The notes under the pieces are model-generated. The model was given only the letters and a program-made list of their open reading frames with translations. It ran no database searches and was not told the origin of the DNA. A DNA stretch of 63,601 nucleotides, the filler included, from Octopus bimaculoides (Eukaryota), in the NCBI RefSeq assembly GCF_001194135.2. It is 6 parts of 5 records of this genome, joined end to end, with 100 filler letters (N's around TTAATTAATTAA, not from the genome) between each part and the next. Parts side by side here need not be neighbours in the genome. Positions count along the whole stretch, not along the records: positions 10,287 to 18,905 come from NC_068986.1; 5 more parts are not named here. The stretch is one strand, 5' to 3'. The translations under genes and the position numbers were made by a program. Shown one piece after another: positions 9,506 through 19,414 of this stretch (position 1 is the stretch's first letter; the number at the start of each line of letters is the position of its first letter).

Positions 9506-10333
9506 AAAAAAAGAAACTAGCGAAATGAATCCAGAACCAGTGAAGGAGCACATGGTTTTAAAGTAACTACGGAACCCTTCAACAATCCAGTGCCGTTACT
9601 CGAAATGATTTACTTCCCTTAGGGAGGGACTTATGAAATCTTCAGGTTCAAAGGCCGGCATATGTTCAATATCCTGTCAAAGAAATTTTCAGATAAGGAA
9701 AGTGAATGTATACACGAAATACTTTGAAATTGTCTTTTGAGTCATAGATGAACCTTAGAACACTGCGGATGAAGGCAGTGGCATCAAACACCTTAATTCA
9801 CATGAGAGTCATAGAAAAAATACCATCAGAAATAGTTACACATCAGTATGGGTATGGCTCATGGGCTAGAACCATTTAAAAGAGTAAAGTGTGTGCGTGT
9901 GCATGTGTGTGTGTGTGTGTGTGAGTGTGTGTGTGTGTGTGCGTGTGTGTGTGTGTGCGCGCGTGCATACGGGTACACTCGAATACTTACTAGTAGCTAT
10001 GAATAAGGTGTCAACAAAGCGCTTACTACCATGATTTCATTCAGAAGGGATTGAAGCGTTAATGGGGTGAGAAAGGAAAAAGGAGAGAGAGAGAGAGAGG
10101 GAGAGAGAGAGAGAGAGAGAGAGAGTAAAAAGGAAAAAATAGAGATTGTTTTTAAAAATCTTTGGACTCGAACAATCCTGTCTACANNNNNNNNNNNNNN
10201 NNNNNNNNNNNNNNNNNNNNNNNNNNNNNNTTAATTAATTAANNNNNNNNNNNNNNNNNNNNNNNNNNNNNNNNNNNNNNNNNNNNATATATATATTCAT
10301 CAATCCATTCCTACTCCATCCATACTCCAGCGT

Positions 10334-10344
10334 CTCTATCTATC

Positions 10345-10404
<60 letters not shown>

Positions 10405-10410
10405 CATCTA

Positions 10411-10448
<38 letters not shown>

Positions 10449-10462
10449 CGTCCGTCCGTCCG

Positions 10463-10518
<56 letters not shown>

Positions 10519-10523
10519 CCTAT

Positions 10524-10574
<51 letters not shown>

Positions 10575-10592
10575 ATCTATCTATCTATCTAT
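10334..10592. repeat. Compound tetranucleotide array (TATC)n-(TGTC)n-(CGTC)n-(TATC)n
   Basis: Directly visible; units differ by single-base steps. Confidence 0.95.
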
Positions 10593-11226
10593 CGCTCGCT
10601 CGATTCAACATACATACATACATATACGCACACACGATATACACTACGTTATAAGAATTTAGAAACTTTCCAAAGAACCGGAGACTATTCGTTGTTAACT
10701 GTAGAACTCGAAGTAGATAAAGCTATAAATGATAGCATGTAAATACCGGCGTAAAGGTTCGAGTCCAACTTGCAGCCTTCGACTTTTTCTATTCTGAGGG
10801 GTTTTAAGGGTTTTTAATTGCTATATGTTCTTGCACGCGAGCGTGTGTGCATGAATGTGTGTGTGAGTGTGTGTGTGTGTGAGTGTGTGTGTGTTTGTTT
10901 GTGCGTTTGTTGGTTTTGTGTGTGTGTGTGTGTGTGTATGTGTGTGTGCGTGCTTCTGTACGTGCGTTCGTGCGTGTGCGCGCGTGTGTGGTTTTTGCTT
11001 ATTTCTTGAAATTACAATGTGAAAGTGCTGAACACAAGCTTGTGTTGAAAGTAAATAGGGTTTGAAACTTGGTTATTTATGTGTGAAATAAACAGGGTTT
11101 CATTCAGTTGGTCATTCGTTCAACTGTACACATCAACAGAGCGAAAAGGATATCTTTCTAAACCGATGGGTAGAACGAATGGCCAGCTGAACGAAGCCGT
11201 GGTGCAGAACACGCACACCCAAACAC

Positions 11227-11262
<36 letters not shown>

Positions 11263-12005
11263 NNNNNNNNNNNNNNNNNNNNNNNNNNNNNNNNNNNNNN
11301 NNNNNNNNNNNNNNNNNNNNNNNNNNNNNNNNNNNNNNNNNNNNNNNNNNNNNNNNNNNNNNNNNNNNNNNNNNNNNNNNNNNNNNNNNNNNNNNNNNNN
11401 NNNNNNNNNNNNNNNNNNNNNNNNNNNNNNNNNNNNNNNNNNNNNNNNNNNNNNNNNNNNNNNNNNNNNNNNNNNNNNNNNNNNNNNNNNNNNNNNNNNN
11501 NNNNNNNNNNNNNNNNNNNNNNNNNNNNNNNNNNNNNNNNNNNNNNNNNNNNNNNNNNNNNNNNNNNNNNNNNNNNNNNNNNNNNNNNNNNNNNNNNNNN
11601 NNNNNNNNNNNNNNNNNNNNNNNNNNNNNNNNNNNNNNNNNNNNNNNNNNNNNNNNNNNNNNNNNNNNNNNNNNNNNNNNNNNNNNNNNNNNNNNNNNNN
11701 NNNNNNNNNNNNNNNNNNNNNNNNNNNNNNNNNNNNNNNNNNNNNNNNNNNNNNNNNNNNNNNNNNNNNNNNNNNNNNNNNNNNNNNNNNNNNNNNNNNN
11801 NNNNNNNNNNNNNNNNNNNNNNNNNNNNNNNNNNNNNNNNNNNNNNNNNNNNNNNNNNNNNNNNNNNNNNNNNNNNNNNNNNNNNNNNNNNNNNNNNNNN
11901 NNNNNNNNNNNNNNNNNNNNNNNNNNNNNNNNNNNNNNNNNNNNNNNNNNNNNNNNNNNNNNNNNNNNNNNNNNNNNNATATATATATATATATATATAT
12001 ATATA

Positions 12006-13268
12006 CAGGAGTTGGACAAAATAATGGAAACACCTTAAAATTTCAAACAAATTTATTTTAATATGGGGTAGGACCACCTTTTGCAGTAATTACAGCCTGA
12101 ATTCTACGAGATGTGGACTCGTGCAAAGTTTGAATTGTTTCCAAAGGAATTTTTGTCCATTCTTCAGCTAAAACAGATTCCAGTTCTTGTAGTGATAATG
12201 GTAGAGGATATCGATTCCTTACTTGTTTTTTCTAAAATGCACCATAAATGTTAAATAATATTGAGATCTGGGGACTGTGGTGGCCAGATCAGATGTTCAA
12301 CTTCATTAGAATGTTCCTTGTGCCATTCAGTAACAACTTTAGTTGTGTAAATTGGTGCGTTATCATCCTGAAAGACTGCGTCTCCCCCAGGAAACAGTTC
12401 CGCAGCAATAGGATGAATTTGATCAGATAAAATGCTTAAATAGTCTTGACTAATAATTCTGTCATGTAGGGAAGCAATTGGAACAGCGGATTTCCAAGAT
12501 ATAGCCCCACCCCCAGATCATAACAGATCTTCCTCCATGTTTAACAGTTGGAAAAAGGAAGTCCGGGTCAAATGCTTCTTTTGGCTGTCTCCACACGTAT
12601 TCTCGGCCGGTGATAAAAAATACGGTAAAGGATGACTCATCCGAGAAAATAACATTCTTCCACTGCTTTAGGGACCAATTCTGTAGGTTTTTTATTCCAC
12701 TCTAAACGCTTTGCAACGTTTGTTTTTGAAAATTCAGGTTCTCTGATTGCAGCCCTTCCGTGAAATCCGGCTTTGTGCAGCTCCCGGTGAACAGTTTTTG
12801 TGGAGACTAGGTTCTCGTGGTGGTCATTAAGCTCTGCAGTAATTTTAGGAACTGTGCTCTTGTGATCCTTTCTAACAATTTGCGTATGAGTCCGACGGTC
12901 TCTATCTGAAAGTTTTCTTCCAGAGTTTTGTTTCGACGAGGAGGTTTTTCCCTCTTTCTCAAAGGCTGTCATTACTTTCGAGACAGTACTTCTTGATAAG
13001 CCAAACATTTCGGCTGTTTTCGATACGCTAGCGCCTGCCATACGAGCACCAACAATTTGACCTCTTTCAAAGTCCGAATGATCTGCCATTTTAATTACTT
13101 TTTTCCGATGGTATCTGAAAAGAAACAGCAATTTTAACAGAACATATTAAGCAACACTAATAATAAATCAAAAAATATAAAAATAAACAAGCTTTTGACG
13201 GTTTTATAGATATTTCAAAATTATGATGCTATGATGCTAGGTGTTTCCATTATTTTGTCCAACCCCTG
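12006..13268 (-). mobile_element. Full-length Tc1/mariner element with DD36E spacing (Incomer-like), 1263 bp, inactivated
   Basis: 30-bp TIRs CAGGAGTTGGACAAAATAATGGAAACACCT (12006-12035) and 13239-13268 match 29/30. TA flanks both ends (12004-12005, 13269-13270). A transposase is encoded on the minus strand. Confidence 0.95.
12058..13089 (-). pseudogene. Tc1-like DD36E transposase pseudogene
   Basis: Begins MADHSDFERGQIVGARMAGASVSKTAEMFGLSRSTVSK (HTH region). It has FSDESS in a shifted frame near 12640 and FQDDNAP at ~12356-12373. Exactly 36 residues follow before SPDLNII*, where the catalytic Glu codon is TAA (12251-12253). It ends RRIQAVITAKGGPTPY* (stop 12058-12060). There are frameshifts. 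Confidence 0.92.
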
Positions 13269-13345
13269 TACATATGTGCCTGACTAGAAAAAGTTTTACT
13301 TTTTAACTTCAGAGCTAAATATTTATATATTTATACTAATGACAA

Positions 13346-13478
13346 TATTTAGTTGCCACTAATTGTGACTGAGGGTGCCCGATAGCACCTGTATTGCTAG
13401 AAATGAGTTAAAATCCCTTATTTCTAGCAATATAGGTGCTATACGGCACCTTCAGTCACAATTAGTGACAATTGAATA
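13346..13478. mobile_element. Short foldback (palindromic) MITE-like element
   Basis: The arm TTGCCACTAATTGTGACTGAGGGTGCCCGATAGCACCTGTATTGCTAGAAATGAG is an imperfect inverted match to CTTATTTCTAGCAATATAGGTGCTATACGGCACCTTCAGTCACAATTAGTGACAA, with a spacer of ~10 bp. Confidence 0.8.
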
Positions 13479-13721
13479 ATTCCTTTTTGGTTTTATATAG
13501 GGTTTAGCTTCTTTTGTTATTTTTGTTAATGACAATAAAATTATAAAAATATATTTTTGTATAACAAATGTTTTCATATGATAGTTTTACTGCATACATA
13601 TTAGTATATGTTTTCGCAAAGTGATTATTACACGCACAAAGGAAGAAAATGATATACTCGTGAAAAGTTTTCGTATAAAATACGTTTTCGTAAAAGAAAA
13701 TCACGTTTTACTAAATAAATG

Positions 13722-13746
13722 TTAATGCACATTATGTATACATACC

Positions 13747-13785
<39 letters not shown>

Positions 13786-14522
13786 TGGTATATTTTAAGT
13801 TCTAGGTAACCCATTACAAGATTTGAAATCACTGGAGCAGCTCGGGTTCCCATTGCAATTCCACATGTATGTCGATAGTAAACTGTATCGAACATGAAAT
13901 AGTTGTTCAGTNNNNNNNNNNNNNNNNNNNNNNNNNNNNNNNNNNNNNNNNNNNNNNNNNNNNNNNNNNNNNNNNNNNNNNNNNNNNNNNNNNNNNTGAT
14001 GCTTCCTGGGATCTCTTCTGGGTATTTTTCTAACCAGAAGGTGATCGCTTCTATACCATAATCGTGTGGGATATTGATGTGCAAATTCACCACATCGAAT
14101 GATACTAACAGGGTTCCTTCATTTATTGTCTTCGGGGGGTGATTAAGCATGTCTAAGTCATCCCTGATGAAGCTTTTCACATATTTTAGAAACAGTTTGA
14201 GTAAGATATCGAGGAAGCTGCTCAAACGGTGGGTTTCACAAGTAGGGCCAGCGATGATGGGTCTCAGTTTGAGGTCAGTAGGGAGAGGAACATTAATGCA
14301 TAGGCTTGGAGAAACTTTGCACGCTTTACAAATATGTTGATTTTCGTGTATTTTAGGTAATCCGTAGAATAGACTAGGTCTGTATTTAAAATTGGATAAA
14401 TAGTCAATTTCCTCTTTAGTGAGGCCCTTTCCATGTATTTGAAGTAAAGAGGATAAGTTTTTAAGTGTCTTCTGTGGGTTGTATTGTACTATCTTCTCAT
14501 AGTAAATATTATTTTCCAACAT
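13722..14522 (-). mobile_element. Penelope-like retroelement reverse transcriptase fragment (open ORF across an ~85-N gap)
   Basis: Translation contains PLE-type RT motifs FYGLPKIH, LRPIIAGP, LVSFDVVNLHINIP and GIAMGTRAAPVISNLVMGYLE. It ends at a (TA)n tract before the YxDD motif. Confidence 0.88.
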
Positions 14523-15329
14523 GGAGAGTATTAAATTTTAAAGAAGCCCGTCTTATATATGTATACGACAGGCTTCTTTCATACACTCACACATATATGT
14601 GTGTGTGTATGTGTGTGGATGTGTGTGTGTGTGTGTGCATGAGTGCGTGTGCGTGTGCGGATGTTCTGCTGGGTTGAATGGTGGGCAAGTCGAGGAAGTC
14701 TATGTCTACTCGCAACTACACAAGCACCTGAACAAATGAGTGAAAGCATGGTAAATGTTACTTAACCATGCGCATATACAGCTAACAACTGTCTTTTTAA
14801 TACTTTCAAGATACCCGTTATCTCTCAAGTTGAAACGAGGTTATAAATTGTTTTTAATGAATTGTTCTCAATGAGGGTATTTTCAGCTTAGTATAATAAC
14901 GCTATAGAATTTCTCTTGAAAAAATGATCTTTCATGTAAGTAATGAAACTGTTATCTCGTATGGTTATAGAAGTCTAATATTTTGTGCTACAGATATGTA
15001 CTCAGTATTAATAATATATTTTCTAATTTAATTGTGGAAACGACATATAGCTAAATTAAGCAAATTAACTCAGCACAAAGTATTGAGAGAATGTGAGAAT
15101 AGTTTTGATATATTTGAAGCTATTGCTGAACATAATTTATAATCTCTGATTCTTGATGTTGTTTAAATACCAAAATAATTTGAAAAAAAAATGTAGAAAC
15201 CACAATGTCGGGAATGATACCACTCATAGACATAAAATAATTCTTATAAACATGCCCAGAGTAAAACCACTCAACCAATCATTGAAAATGCAATACATGT
15301 AGTGATAAAGAAATATTGGTTTCAAGCAA

Positions 15330-15530
15330 TTGGTCAGCAATTTCGGTAAGGGGTAAGTCGATTACATCCTCCCAGTGCTCAACTGGTAATTATTTTATCG
15401 ACCCTTAGAGAATGAAAAGCAAAGTCAACTTCAGTGGAATTTGAGCTCAGAACATAAAGATTGACGAAATGCCCCTAAGAATTTCGACCGGCGTGCTAAA
15501 AAGATGGTCATCGCTGCTGTTTTGCTTCAG
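15330..15530 (-). mobile_element. Diverged SINE family B copy
   Basis: CAACTGGTAATTATTTTATCGACCC...GGAATTTGAGCTCAGAAC...GACGAAATGCC...CCGGCGTGCTAA parallels 15740-15880. Confidence 0.75.
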
Positions 15531-15686
15531 AGTGGCTGGAAGCAATCTCTGTTGTGATATGAAGCGGGTTTATTGTTGTGTGACATCTAGCTTGTTTAGG
15601 AAAGTTCACCCTGGTAAACATTGTGGTTCTAGCTATGCTTCCCCATACTTGCTTCCCCTGTCAAAATATATCAATAGAGAAATATT

Positions 15687-15900
15687 CTTTTCTACTCTAG
15701 GTACAAGGCCCGAAATTTTGGGGGAGGGGGCCAGTCGATTAGATCGACACTAGTACGCAACTGGTACTTAATTTATCGACTCCGAAAGGATGAAAGGTAA
15801 AGTCGATCTCGGCGGAATTTGAACTCAGAACGTAAAGACAGACGAAATACCGCTTAGCATTTCGACCGGCATGTTAACGTTTCTGCCAGCTCGCCGCCTT
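15687..15900 (-). mobile_element. Full-length tRNA-derived SINE family B with 16-bp TSD
   Basis: The minus-strand head is GGCGGCGAGCTGGCAGAAACG...GAGTTCAAATTCC. A perfect direct repeat TCAATAGAGAAATATT lies at 15671-15686 and 15901-15916. Confidence 0.92.
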
Positions 15901-16000
15901 TCAATAGAGAAATATTAAAAGTTGCAGTGGATCCCATCTTCTATGATATTAGATCTGAACTCGTCATAGCCTGAACATTGCCATATTAACACCTCACTAT

Positions 16001-16753
16001 AGGGCTTTCCTATAAGTAGGTTATCTTCCTTGGCTAGGCGGCGCTCCATGTAGCTAATTAAACTTCCGCAGACTACCCACGCCATTGTTATTGTTTTACG
16101 TCTTATCATGGATATAAAACAGCTTGATGATTCAGCTATCGAAGTACTTACTGTGCCTGAGTTAAAGAAATATTTAAGATTATATGGACAGTATGTTACT
16201 GGAAGAAAGGCGGACTTGATTGAAAGGTTGAAAGGAATAAAAATTCTGTCGATGAAGAATGTCAACAAAGTAAATTCATCGGACGATAAGTCTGAAGTAT
16301 CGGACGATACTTCAGACAGGAATAAGCAGAAGCTTATATCTCCTCTCGGTGANNNNNNNNNNNNNNNNNNNNNNNNNNNNNNNNNNNNNNNNNNNNNNNN
16401 NNNNNNNNNNNNNNNNNNNNNNNNNNNNNNNNNNNNNNNNNNNNNNNNNNNNNNNNNAAAGCAACAGTTAAGGAGTGGCATATTTTACCACGACAGACAC
16501 GTACACAGCATCGAATACCACGATGTGAGTGAAAGCTGCTCTCACTGTATTGTCCGGTGTCTGGTAATCCCTTCAATACCGACATCAAACCAAAAAAAGA
16601 ATCCTGACCACAGAGTGTGGGTAATTATGTCAAAGGTCACTGGCAATGTGCATTCAGCTGATTGCAACTGTTAAAGCAAGTCACTGAGCATGCGTACATG
16701 TCATACGGGAGAGTTCCAATCAGGGGTGGATAACAACCTTATAGGAACCCCCT
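16001..16753 (+). mobile_element. TIR-bounded non-autonomous DNA transposon carrying a SAP + truncated SWIM-like ORF (ISL2EU/PHIS-like, tentative)
   Basis: The left end AGGGCTTTCCTATAAGTAGGTTATC (16001-16025) and the reverse complement of the right end, AGGGGGTTCCTATAAGGTTGTTATC (16729-16753), match 20/25. Both ends are flanked by TATA, so the TSD could be AT, TA or TATA. Confidence 0.65.
16108..16674 (+). CDS. SAP-domain protein fragment ending in the first half of a SWIM-like Zn finger; probably a truncated transposon accessory ORF
   Basis: LTVPELKKYLRLYGQYVTGRKADLIERLKG fits the SAP consensus. The C-terminal CLVIPS...HRVWVIMSKVTGNVHSADCNC* fits the segment leading into the SWIM CxC. The frame is open on both sides of an N gap (16352-16457). 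Confidence 0.65.
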   Translation: MDIKQLDDSAIEVLTVPELKKYLRLYGQYVTGRKADLIERLKGIKILSMKNVNKVNSSDDKSEVSDDTSDRNKQKLISPLGXXXXXXXXXXXXXXXXXXXXXXXXXXXXXXXXXXXXKQQLRSGIFYHDRHVHSIEYHDVSESCSHCIVRCLVIPSIPTSNQKKNPDHRVWVIMSKVTGNVHSADCNC

Positions 16754-17339
16754 ATATGTAATATTTTCGGTTTTACCAAAGATATTATGGAAGTTTCGCT
16801 CTCTTATGCAACCTCCATAAAATTAGCGATACCATAGGAATGTTCGTCAAGATGCAGTCCAGCAACTAACAATGTTTGTCCTTGGGATTAATTGGTTGCA
16901 TTGACAAAGTTTAGATGTTTTTAAAAACTGAAGCCTTTTGAATTGAAAGAGATCTTCGGTGGGTATGAGCGTAAGATAAGCACAGTAAGATTAATAGTCT
17001 CTATGACAAACTTAACAAACTTAACTAAAATTAATTTTATTTATTCTTGTTCACTTATAAGAAAAAGTTATGCATGTCTTGTGTAATATAACTTTATGAA
17101 AGAAGAAAAAAAACAGATTATGTATTAATATGTATGTAGGTTCCTTGAAACACGAGTAACTTAACAATAAAACGGTTGAAAACAGTGTTCAAAGATCTAA
17201 CACTCTATACTCTGTCAAAGGCATTTTCTCAATATCTACAGAAATGATGATGATAATGATGCTGATAATGATGATGATGTTGATGATGATGATGATGATG
17301 TTAGTCTCTCGTAGTCGGAGAAAGGTGATTCCTACAATT

Positions 17340-17590
17340 TCTTGCTGAACAAATGATTTGTTTATAATGATCAAATGTTTGTGCTGTACATTAGCTCACT
17401 CCCTCCATCAAATCATCGTTGCTTGAACAGGTGTACAGTGTACCATGTGTCTGTGTCGAAGTGGTTGCAGAGCAACATGGGATGAAGTTTTTTGCTGAAG
17501 AATACAACACACCATCCGTCCATGAATTGAAACCACCATCTCGCAATCATGAGTGCAACACCATAAACATAAGGCAATGCACCCTTACAT
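17340..17590 (-). mobile_element. Diverged SINE related to family C
   Basis: GAAGTTTTTTGCTGAAGAATACAACACACCATCCGTCCATGAATTGAAACCACCATCTCGCAATCATGAGTGCAACACC parallels 3725-3810. Confidence 0.55.
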
Positions 17591-17615
17591 CTACAAAAGA
17601 TATTCATTACTAAAA

Positions 17616-17830
17616 GCAATGAGCTCGTAGAATCGCTAATACGCCGGACAAATCGCTTAGCACCATTTCTTATGGCTTTTTGCATTCAGAGTTCAAATTC
17701 CGTCGAGGTCAACTTTATCTTCCATCCTTTTGGGATCGACAAAATAAGTACCAGTAAAGTACTGGAATCGATGAAAACACCTATCACCTAAAATTGCTGG
17801 CATTGTGCTAAAATTTGAAAGTATTATTAA
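17616..17830 (+). mobile_element. SINE family B copy
   Basis: GAGTTCAAATTCCGTCGAGGTCAACTTTATCTTCCATCCTTTTGGGATCGACAAAATAAGTACCAGT is the reverse complement of the 15687-15900 core. Confidence 0.85.
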
Positions 17831-17846
17831 AGACCGTCTTCGTTAC

Positions 17847-17883
<37 letters not shown>

Positions 17884-18069
17884 CACTACAAAGTATTAAA
17901 ATACATGCTCCAGTACTTTGTTAGGTAAAATATGAATCGAAATTCTTCGTGGATCTAAAAAGCATTCCTGTGAGAGGATTAGAATGATGATGAGTTAAAA
18001 TTTTTCAGTCAATTTCATTAGAAGCCATTTAACGTATCTAAGTCTGAAACTGTAAGAGCTGAATCAATT

Positions 18070-18860
18070 TATTACCTCCCTTCTTGCCAATAACAAGAGC
18101 TTTGATTCAATGCTGCCTGTGCGAAAAGATCTAGTCACTACAACTTAGTGATCGCTAGAAGATTGCTCGCCTCTTTGTATCCTTCTCAATCTATATCCTA
18201 TTCAGTACGAGCACTTTCAATACTATGCCACTCAGGGAATGTCAGCACTCCCTGCTATTATTCTTTTTGGTATCCTAGATAAGGCATCAACTTTCTATCT
18301 TTGAGCATCTGTTCAATATTCTGCATGTTACCAAACAGCTTCAATAATGCTCTTGCTTATCACAAATTTATCACTTTGGCATTTCTCTTGAAATTCCATC
18401 TAATCCAGATACCTTTCCTGTTGTTAATTGCTCAATGGTTCTTCCTAATTTTCCCAACGAATGTATCATATACAGCCACTTCCACCTCCTCATGTGGTTG
18501 AGAAATTACCAGAGCATATTACCCATTCAGTTCTTAGTTCCTGCTTATATTACAATGTTCTTTCCATCTTTCTTGTTTGATGTTTATATCATATGCTATT
18601 AATTGGCCGACAATACTGAACACATGTAACATTTTGTGATCAGCTTACTTTACCTGCAATCTCACTTATCATTTCATAAGCTTTTCTGATTCTTCTGCTC
18701 TTCTGCATTGAGTAAGTTATCTACATTATTAGCCTTCACTTCCAGAAATATTCATTTCCTTCTTCCTCAACATCTTTGTAACTCTCTGTTGCTCTCTTTT
18801 GAGGCTTCAGATCTTAACTGTTTCCACTTTGATGTCCGTCTCATCCACTTTCTAAATTTT
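18070..18860 (-). pseudogene. Decayed LINE ORF2 fragment (region leading into RT; RTE-like, tentative)
   Basis: Broken minus-strand translation gives KQERWKEH, TGKVSGLDGISREM, LKVLVLNRI and SCSD*IFSHRQ. These match the GKAxGxDGI and RSCxDQIFxLRQ motifs of non-LTR RTs. Confidence 0.65.
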
Positions 18861-19414
18861 AACACACACACGTACATATACGATATATATATATATATAT
18901 ATATANNNNNNNNNNNNNNNNNNNNNNNNNNNNNNNNNNNNNNNNNNNNTTAATTAATTAANNNNNNNNNNNNNNNNNNNNNNNNNNNNNNNNNNNNNNN
19001 NNNNNATATATATATATATATATATATATAAAACAAATAATATATGAGTATATTGCGTATATACGTACAGGTATGTGCATACCTACGTGTACCTGTATAT
19101 ATAGGTGCATATCTGGGTACAGGACATTGCAAACAAAACGTAGACAAAATAATAATAATAATCAGAGTATAGAGCACACACAGGCCACATAGAGAACATT
19201 TTCCTTCATCAGCTACACCCATAGGTGAGCAAGGAGAGAGAGAGAGGAAGAGAGAAATATAGTAGTAACGGAAGGAAGAACGAGAGGGGGAAAGAGAGAG
19301 ATATAGTAGTAACAGAAGGAAGAACGAGAGGGGAAAAAAGTTATAGAGATAGAGAAGATAGAGTCGCATCAGAAAATATAAAGTTCAAAAACTACTTACA
19401 GGGATATATATATG

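Follow-up and report, generated by a model that had tools for sequence, protein, structure and literature searches.

A probable internally deleted ISL2EU-group transposon carrying a truncated SAP-SWIM reading frame in Octopus bimaculoides

We analysed a stretch of 63,601 nucleotides, filler included (hereafter the window), composed of six parts of five records of the Octopus bimaculoides genome (RefSeq assembly GCF_001194135.2), and focused on a mini-element in the part that derives from NC_068986.1 (window 10,287 to 18,905). Judged from its sequence, window 16001-16753 is very probably a non-autonomous, internally deleted copy of a cut-and-paste transposon of the ISL2EU group (PHIS superfamily), which inserts at AT. 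The complete parent would have contained two convergent genes, an accessory gene encoding SAP, SWIM and YqaJ domains on the left and a transposase gene encoding THAP, HTH and DDE_Tnp_4 domains on the right, and one deletion would have broken exon 1 of the accessory gene just past the initial cysteine pair of the SWIM finger and fused it to the right-terminal 83 bp. An earlier note on this DNA had proposed an internal-deletion derivative that kept the N-terminus of an accessory protein; this is borne out by the homology of both element ends and by a junction at 16670/16671.

Such a deletion would have cost the element the remainder of the SWIM finger, the nuclease domain and the entire transposase gene, and would have supplied a TAA stop. 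The short form would then consist of 107 bp comprising left terminus and promoter region, 563 bp of exon 1 (including a gap of 105 N) and 83 bp of right terminus. In cut-and-paste elements such losses usually arise when gap repair after excision is aborted or interrupted, and this could have happened here.

Termini, reading frame and deletion junction

The junction was placed by comparison with L001, a 1990-bp Logan contig (run ERR12120951) that was the fourteenth match in a protein-collection search with the window frame, and with complete elements of bivalves described below. Homology to the accessory gene of L001 ends at 16670, right after the Cys-Asn-Cys (CNC) codons, at a point where L001 itself continues toward an intron. 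The following 83 bp (16671-16753) align to the transposase-side ends of the element of Sinanodonta woodiana and of a second Logan contig, L012. The change from gene homology to far-terminus homology thus falls between 16670 and 16671, which places the deletion junction there and indicates that the TAA at 16672 is a product of the deletion. In complete elements, the counterpart of the right subterminal region (Table 1) lies upstream of the minus-strand transposase gene.

Both ends of the octopus element are related to those of the bivalve elements. The left end can be matched, position by position, to the left ends of L001, Sinanodonta and Mya (alignment A2). All four sequences of this alignment carry ACTTCCG unchanged, some 65 bp in from the left terminus, and TAGG(C/T)GGCGCT is common to the octopus element, L001 and Sinanodonta. 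The subterminal motifs conserved between octopus and Sinanodonta are TAGG(C/T)GGCGCT and AGAGTTCC.AAT.AGGGG. We scored the end comparisons as local alignments against 1000 shuffles each. The right end of the octopus element matched the right end of Sinanodonta with a score of 42 (shuffle maximum 23; 0/1000), its left end matched the left end of Sinanodonta with 36 (shuffle maximum 26; 0/1000), and the reverse complement of its right end matched L012 with 29 (shuffle maximum 23; 0/1000). The match between the left ends of octopus and Mya exceeded the shuffles narrowly (27, shuffle maximum 26; 0/1000). About 45 bp at each terminus are recognisably conserved, window 16001-16045 and 16710-16753 corresponding to 9900-9946 and 14420-14460 of a unionid mussel locus (L010). 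Such conservation between octopus and mussel could arise because the ends are under strong constraint, or because the element spread horizontally among molluscs. We additionally noted CGGAAGT, the complement of ACTTCCG, near the right end of the bivalve elements.

The element measures about 750 bp, has AT outside each end, and is flanked by ...CACCTCACTAT on the left and ATGTAATATT... on the right. Its inverted-repeat arms (15998-16025 and 16729-16756) are 28 nt long and 82% complementary; counted from 16001, 20 of the 25 positions match the reverse complement of 16729-16753. When the surrounding 1 kb was shuffled 200 times and the best 28-nt inverted match with arms at least 300 nt apart was recorded, the maximum was 20 matches, against 23/28 in the real sequence, and the terminal inverted repeat (TIR) is thus beyond chance. 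The imperfect 25-bp inverted termini and the flanking TATA described in the earlier note were recovered by repeat search, by shuffling and by direct reading of the sequence.

The same note had left the target-site duplication as AT, TA or TATA. Because the TATA flanking the octopus copy is palindromic, the choice among these rests on homology with the bivalve elements, and it falls on AT. The base adjoining the conserved core is A on the left and T on the right in octopus and Sinanodonta, and T on the left and A on the right in Mya and L012, while the dinucleotide outside it is always AT. AT lies directly outside both ends in seven of eight Mya copies, and it adjoins the ends of the Sinanodonta copy and the one visible end of L012. 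Since the Mya base next to the core (T left, A right) cannot be part of a direct repeat, it belongs to the element, and the duplication is AT, giving a cross-family pattern of T-AT-[A...T]-AT-A. A duplication of TA or TATA, with a TIR starting at GGG, was considered and rejected, as the Mya flanks would then be TT and AA, with no direct repeat. To judge from these flanks, insertion is at an AT dinucleotide that is duplicated upon insertion.

Between these ends lies an open reading frame (ORF) on the plus strand, which starts with an ATG at 16108, 107 bp inside the left end; its TAA stop, at 16672-16674 and 79 bp short of the right end, follows Cys-Asn-Cys without a break, in agreement with the distances of about 107 and 80 bp given before. 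Region 16026-16107, upstream of the ORF, is probably the promoter and 5' untranslated region of the accessory gene, and is possibly also bound by the transposase. A SAP domain, previously recognised as a helix pair, was detected by Pfam (PF02037; E=4.8e-8; 32.9 bits against a gathering cut-off of 23.9 bits) at residues 13-42 of the 81 residues that precede the gap. Pfam returned nothing relevant for the 71-amino-acid C-terminal piece after the gap, and the SWIM profile (PF04434) had no match in the window fragment. The "half-SWIM" of the earlier note is nonetheless correct as a statement about the motif: a SWIM finger needs CxC...CxH, the only zinc ligands in the window ORF are those of C-N-C, and in alignment A1 the window sequence ends at the CxC of the conserved motif CxCxAGxGExCxH. 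The ratio of nonsynonymous to synonymous differences (pN/pS) between the window ORF and L001, given by segment in Table 1, is 0.18 when the segments are combined, indicating that the coding sequence was constrained in the ancestral or parent lineage.

The ORF is interrupted by an assembly gap. The N run at 16353-16457 takes up 35 codons, and the length of 188 codons includes these unread ones. On the left of the gap, window 16005-16352 aligns to positions 5-340 of L001 with 76% nucleotide identity, and on the right, window 16458-16670 aligns to positions 452-664 with 87% identity and zero indels. Both gap edges are collinear within one L001 exon, in the same reading frame as the homologue, and the 105 N of the window and the 111 nt of L001 both preserve the frame. 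The octopus paralogues carry differing deletions, and one frameshifted stretch, precisely in the gap interval, and the 188-codon frame of the window copy is accordingly no more than putative.

Table 1. Features of the octopus mini-element in window coordinates
Feature	Position	Strand	Evidence or remark
Left copy of AT target-site duplication, context T-AT	15999-16000		Direct reading and cross-family comparison
Left TIR, AGGGCTTTCCTATAAGTAGGTTATC	16001-16025	+	20/25 against right arm; base-for-base alignment with Mya, Sinanodonta and L001 left termini
Left subterminal non-coding region, upstream of accessory gene	16026-16107	+	Motifs TAGGCGGCGCT (16035-16045) and ACTTCCG (16062-16068)
First part of ORF, up to gap	16108-16352	+	SAP domain at about 16144-16233; Pfam SAP; pN/pS 0.29 against L001 (SAP segment)
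Assembly gap, 105 N, within ORF	16353-16457		L001 counterpart of 111 nt, encoding EVLPDPNLLNSDWAKDLCKLPNFTENDVYNYLVLRMKA
Second part of ORF: beta-strand region before SWIM finger, then C-N-C and TAA	16459-16674	+	L001 alignment; pN/pS 0.07 (pre-SWIM segment)
Internal deletion junction	16670/16671		Accessory-gene exon 1 leftward; last 83 bp of parent rightward
Right subterminal region	16671-16728	+	Alignment A3; local alignment AGAGTTCC-AATCAGGGGTGGATAACAACCTTATAGGAA against Sinanodonta
Right TIR, GATAACAACCTTATAGGAACCCCCT	16729-16753	-	Pairing with left arm; alignment with ends of complete elements
Right copy of AT target-site duplication, context AT-A	16754-16755		Direct reading and cross-family comparison

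The parent gene and complete elements in bivalves

The structure of the parent gene was read from L001, which starts at the base homologous to window 16001 and has the same upstream region and the same exon 1 up to CNCTAG. In L001 this exon is followed by a GT-AG intron (cactgcagg/gtaagag) and by exon 2, QGEACNHIGALL..., which completes the SWIM finger (CNCTAGQGEACNH), so that the spliced motif is CxC-x8-CxH. After the SWIM motif, the spliced protein matches Pfam YqaJ (9.6e-20) and Viral_alk_exo (4.9e-17). A search with this protein identified 116 relatives (E<=1e-10). Many bivalves and gastropods have a full-length SAP-SWIM-YqaJ protein, 565-615 amino acids in size (Sinanodonta, with 54% identity, and the genera Pecten, Pinctada, Mercenaria, Mya, Haliotis and Gigantopelta), and more distant relatives were identified in amphioxus, ticks and corals. 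The full-length relatives (spliced L001, P0016 of Sinanodonta and P0027 of Mya) match Pfam YqaJ at 1e-17 to 1e-20, whereas the window copy has no YqaJ domain. The motif CxCxAGxGExCxH is nearly invariant in a 15-sequence alignment, in which the window sequence halts after CxC. The SWIM profile of Pfam aligns along its full length with P0016 but falls short of the cut-off (E=0.003; 17.5 bits, cut-off 19.6 bits), and the UniRef name of both P0016 and P0019 is "SWIM-type domain-containing protein".

Evidence for the longer gene was also found in the octopus itself. The O. bimaculoides protein XP_014784938.1 (P0017) covers the YqaJ part, and another O. bimaculoides model, P0015, joins a window-type exon 1 (...CNCTAG) to the YqaJ part of P0017, indicating that longer copies of the window's own subfamily exist in O. 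bimaculoides. The existence of a longer parent gene with SAP, SWIM and nuclease domains, postulated in the earlier note, is thus upheld by the exon structure of L001 and by P0015 and P0017.

Complete elements containing both genes were identified in two bivalves. In the Mya arenaria assembly GCA_026914265.1 the P0027 gene lies on 12 contigs, and we examined eight loci (L002-L009). The eight copies have in common a 6485-bp block of 99.9% identity with sharp edges, which contains the SAP-SWIM-YqaJ gene and, downstream and convergent to it, a gene for a 521-amino-acid protein with THAP, HTH_Tnp_4 and DDE_Tnp_4 domains; both genes are annotated as intact. The element ends are TGTCCTTTCCGATAAC... 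or TGTCCTTTCCGATAACTTGGTTAC... on the left and ...GTTATCGGAAAGGACA on the right. At L003, two copies lie head to tail in tandem with a single common AT. From these sequences, the Mya element looks recently or currently active, and its copies would be a good system for testing the part that the YqaJ protein plays in transposition.

The Sinanodonta woodiana element is about 4.6 kb long and likewise pairs a SAP-SWIM-YqaJ gene with a convergent transposase gene, between ends that read T-AT, AGGGCATTCCAATAAG...CTTATTGGAATGCCCT, AT-A. Its transposase (P0131) matches DDE_Tnp_4 (1.3e-43), HTH_Tnp_4 (3.1e-14) and THAP (6.3e-7). Contig L012 likewise contains a transposase and a convergent gene for a 571-amino-acid protein, and its one visible end reads TAT followed by TCCCCATTTCAATAAC. 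Thus the DDE transposase that the earlier note had suggested looking for within the same TIRs is present in Mya and Sinanodonta, beside the SAP-SWIM-YqaJ gene.

The YqaJ domain was also observed in other company. In Logan contigs it is fused to a Mutator-like transposase domain (P0113, P0125 and P0128; PF20700 at E=1.4e-89 in P0113, a protein of 883 amino acids), and a PHD-type C-terminal finger is present in YqaJ relatives from a tick, a coral and several unnamed ENA (metagenome-assembly) entries (P0075, P0080 and P0083-P0085), indicating that the nuclease travels with more than one transposase superfamily.

Octopus copies, alternative explanations and surrounding sequence

The protein-collection search with the window frame identified 14 relatives, 13 of which are O. 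bimaculoides gene models of 119-278 amino acids, mostly named "SAP domain-containing protein" and otherwise "uncharacterized protein". Seven models (P0001, P0002, P0005, P0006, P0007, P0011 and P0013) end exactly in ...HSADCNC. P0003 continues as KSLSMRTCHTGEFQSGV..., which is the translation of the window from 16675 onward, the model skipping 20 residues around CNC. The common CNC end of the seven models and the right-end sequence of P0003 indicate that amplification of the short form followed the deletion event. In a second subfamily (P0008-P0010) the frame extends past CNC by a few codons, reading CNCTAGKE... Both termini survive in the short form, so that it could be mobilised in trans by transposase from complete copies, and it would in this way have been copied to several loci.

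Two UniRef models of O. bimaculoides are chimeric. P0012 joins a fragment of the ORF to a Kazal domain with low-complexity sequence after it, and P0013 joins an ORF fragment to a leader rich in lysine and glutamate. These fusions are either annotation artefacts or exonised pieces of the transposon.

Several observations weigh against an assignment to the ISL2EU group as an amplified deletion derivative. The right end of the octopus element has no significant match to the right end of Mya (score 13, shuffle maximum 23; 572/1000). AT, TA and TATA duplications are indistinguishable from the window copy alone. Published ISL2EU TIRs usually begin with GG, at a target of A-AT-T (PMC4482050); in contrast, the window element begins A-GGG, with GG at bases 2-3, its Mya relative begins TGTCC, and the context of the window copy is T-AT/AT-A rather than A-AT/AT-T. 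The octopus copy number and the common junction are based on protein gene models only. Finally, no octopus-labelled transposase occurs among the best 120 of 2163 matches to the Sinanodonta transposase, and a cognate autonomous partner in octopus is therefore not demonstrated; two Logan contigs among the transposase matches come from source runs that differ from the ERR12120951 of L001.

Among the alternative explanations, the one that survives best concerns function, and we consider it unlikely. The short SAP and half-SWIM frame might be selected as a small DNA-binding protein, a competitor or repressor, or might be a SAP exon exapted by the host; as a dominant-negative competitor of the full SAP-SWIM-YqaJ protein, it would resemble the KP repressors. 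Both parts of the frame that flank the gap are open, as are at least seven paralogues up to CNC, but the gene-model set is biased in favour of open frames, and with copies only about 5% apart at the amino-acid level open frames are expected by chance; furthermore, the many in-frame deletions and the frameshifted stretch among the paralogues resemble decay. The 107-bp upstream region has been kept with its conserved motifs, and P0012 and P0013 fuse pieces of the frame to unrelated exons, a hint of recruitment. However, the low pN/pS was obtained against the distant, complete-type L001 and reflects autonomous ancestors, not the short copies, and the zinc site cannot form without the CxH helix. 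There is accordingly only a small chance, in our assessment, that a short-form product driven by the accessory promoter binds element or host DNA and modulates ISL2EU transposition, or that the SAP exons are under recruitment. The truncated SAP frame, which is without the zinc-binding CxH helix and the nuclease domain, is most likely a remnant, carried passively and non-functional. Its product, if made, would comprise a SAP motif and the strands ahead of the SWIM helix, with just two of four zinc ligands.

It is less probable still that the CNC end results from a point or frameshift mutation in a continuous gene, with the CxH half in the +1 frame and no deletion. The +1 frame after CNC (KASH, a stop, then ACVHV) does have C-V-H eight residues on, superficially resembling CxC-x8-CxH. 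Yet the +1 frame does not fit CxCxAGxGExCNH, the true motif, which every relative has; the L001 sequence that follows CNCTAG (cactgcagg, then the intron from gtaagag...) is unrelated to the window from 16671 onward; and window 16671-16753 has significant alignments to Sinanodonta and L012, in both cases at the transposase-side terminus. We therefore rejected a frameshifted CxH half, the sequence after 16670 being unrelated to the intron and exon 2 of L001 and matching the far terminus.

An assembly artefact, either a full-length element compressed at the N gap or two sequences wrongly joined at 16670, is equally hard to credit: the element does contain a gap of estimated length (16353-16457), but this gap cannot conceal the missing 4-6 kb because both of its edges lie in exon 1, 111 nt apart in L001, the junction at 16670 sits in sequenced bases, the CNC stop recurs in seven independent models, and P0003 has the right-end sequence downstream of the frame.

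The mini-element lies in a repeat-rich, gene-poor context, and we identified further repeats and reading frames around it. A second TIR-bounded deletion derivative occupies window 11999-13275, with 37-nt inverted repeats of 95% identity (ATATATACAGGAGTTGGACAAAATAATGGAAACACCT and its complement) and about 1.2 kb inside; it contains a minus-strand ORF of 164 codons (12637-13131) with a match to HTH_Tnp_Tc3_2, the N-terminal domain of Tc1/mariner transposases (E=1.7e-13). Its sequence suggests a truncated element of the Tc1/mariner type, flanked by TA. A dispersed repeat of about 95-130 nt is present in three copies of 79-80% identity, two of them just upstream of the mini-element (15374-15499 and 15752-15877) and one downstream in the opposite orientation (17679-17772). 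It resembles a short interspersed nuclear element; Rfam and tRNA scans of the window piece that holds the mini-element and the dispersed repeats found nothing. A minus-strand ORF of 266 codons (13722-14522) runs across another N gap and has no Pfam match at E<=0.01; a near-perfect 62-nt hairpin (13346-13407 and 13417-13478) adjoins it. Further to the left are a long (TCTA)n microsatellite of about 64 units and TG/AC microsatellites (10335-10593, 10843-10952 and 11209-11262), and a gap of about 700 N (approximately 11263-11978).

Comparison with known transposon systems

ISL2EU elements are characterised by an AT duplication and two ORFs, one for a transposase with THAP, HTH and DDE domains and the other containing a YqaJ exonuclease domain; the published scope of the group is 25 families in 14 animal species, in which non-autonomous copies were not surveyed (PMC4482050; PMC4122938). 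The octopus element resembles this animal-restricted group (PMC4482050) in being bounded by TIRs with AT flanks and in having complete relatives with a transposase and a YqaJ ORF. It differs in that the window copy lacks a transposase gene and retains no more than the first third of the second ORF, and in that the DNA-binding part of the second ORF is here resolved as a SAP domain and a SWIM finger. The description of the ISL2EU accessory protein is thereby refined to SAP, SWIM finger and YqaJ nuclease. The searchable literature contains no pairing of ISL2EU with Octopus and no cephalopod ISL2EU family, and a literature search for YqaJ, SWIM and transposon together returned no relevant paper. 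The surveys consulted did not cover cephalopods, and ISL2EU elements are now placed in these animals. For annotation, at least 13 O. bimaculoides gene models are fragments of this transposon family and are to be masked as repeats.

Spy elements, of the same PHIS (PIF/Harbinger-ISL2EU-Spy) superfamily (PMC4122938), have a related DDE_Tnp_4-type transposase, are common in molluscs and have AT-rich targets. In contrast to the relatives of the window element, which have both genes and AT flanks, Spy inserts into AAATTT with no target duplication and has a single ORF, with neither THAP nor a YqaJ gene.

The window element belongs, as an unremarkable non-autonomous copy, to a transposon group already known, and it can be compared with the internally deleted derivatives and miniature inverted-repeat transposable elements (MITEs) of PIF/Harbinger, such as the Tourist-like mPIF of maize. 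Like these, it is short, has the termini of its autonomous partner and no transposase, and was amplified after deletion; mobilisation in trans is presumed. At about 750 bp and with a recognisable coding remnant, it is a deletion derivative and not a classic non-coding MITE. Its group also differs from PIF/Harbinger in having a 2-bp AT duplication rather than a 3-bp TWA, and a YqaJ rather than a Myb/SANT second ORF.

Finally, the KP-type P elements of Drosophila offer a parallel for the truncated frame: in these elements an internal deletion shortens the encoded protein to an N-terminal DNA-binding product, still driven by the promoter of the element itself. In KP, it is the transposase itself that is truncated, and repressor activity has been demonstrated, whereas in the window copy it is the accessory protein, and not the transposase, that is truncated.

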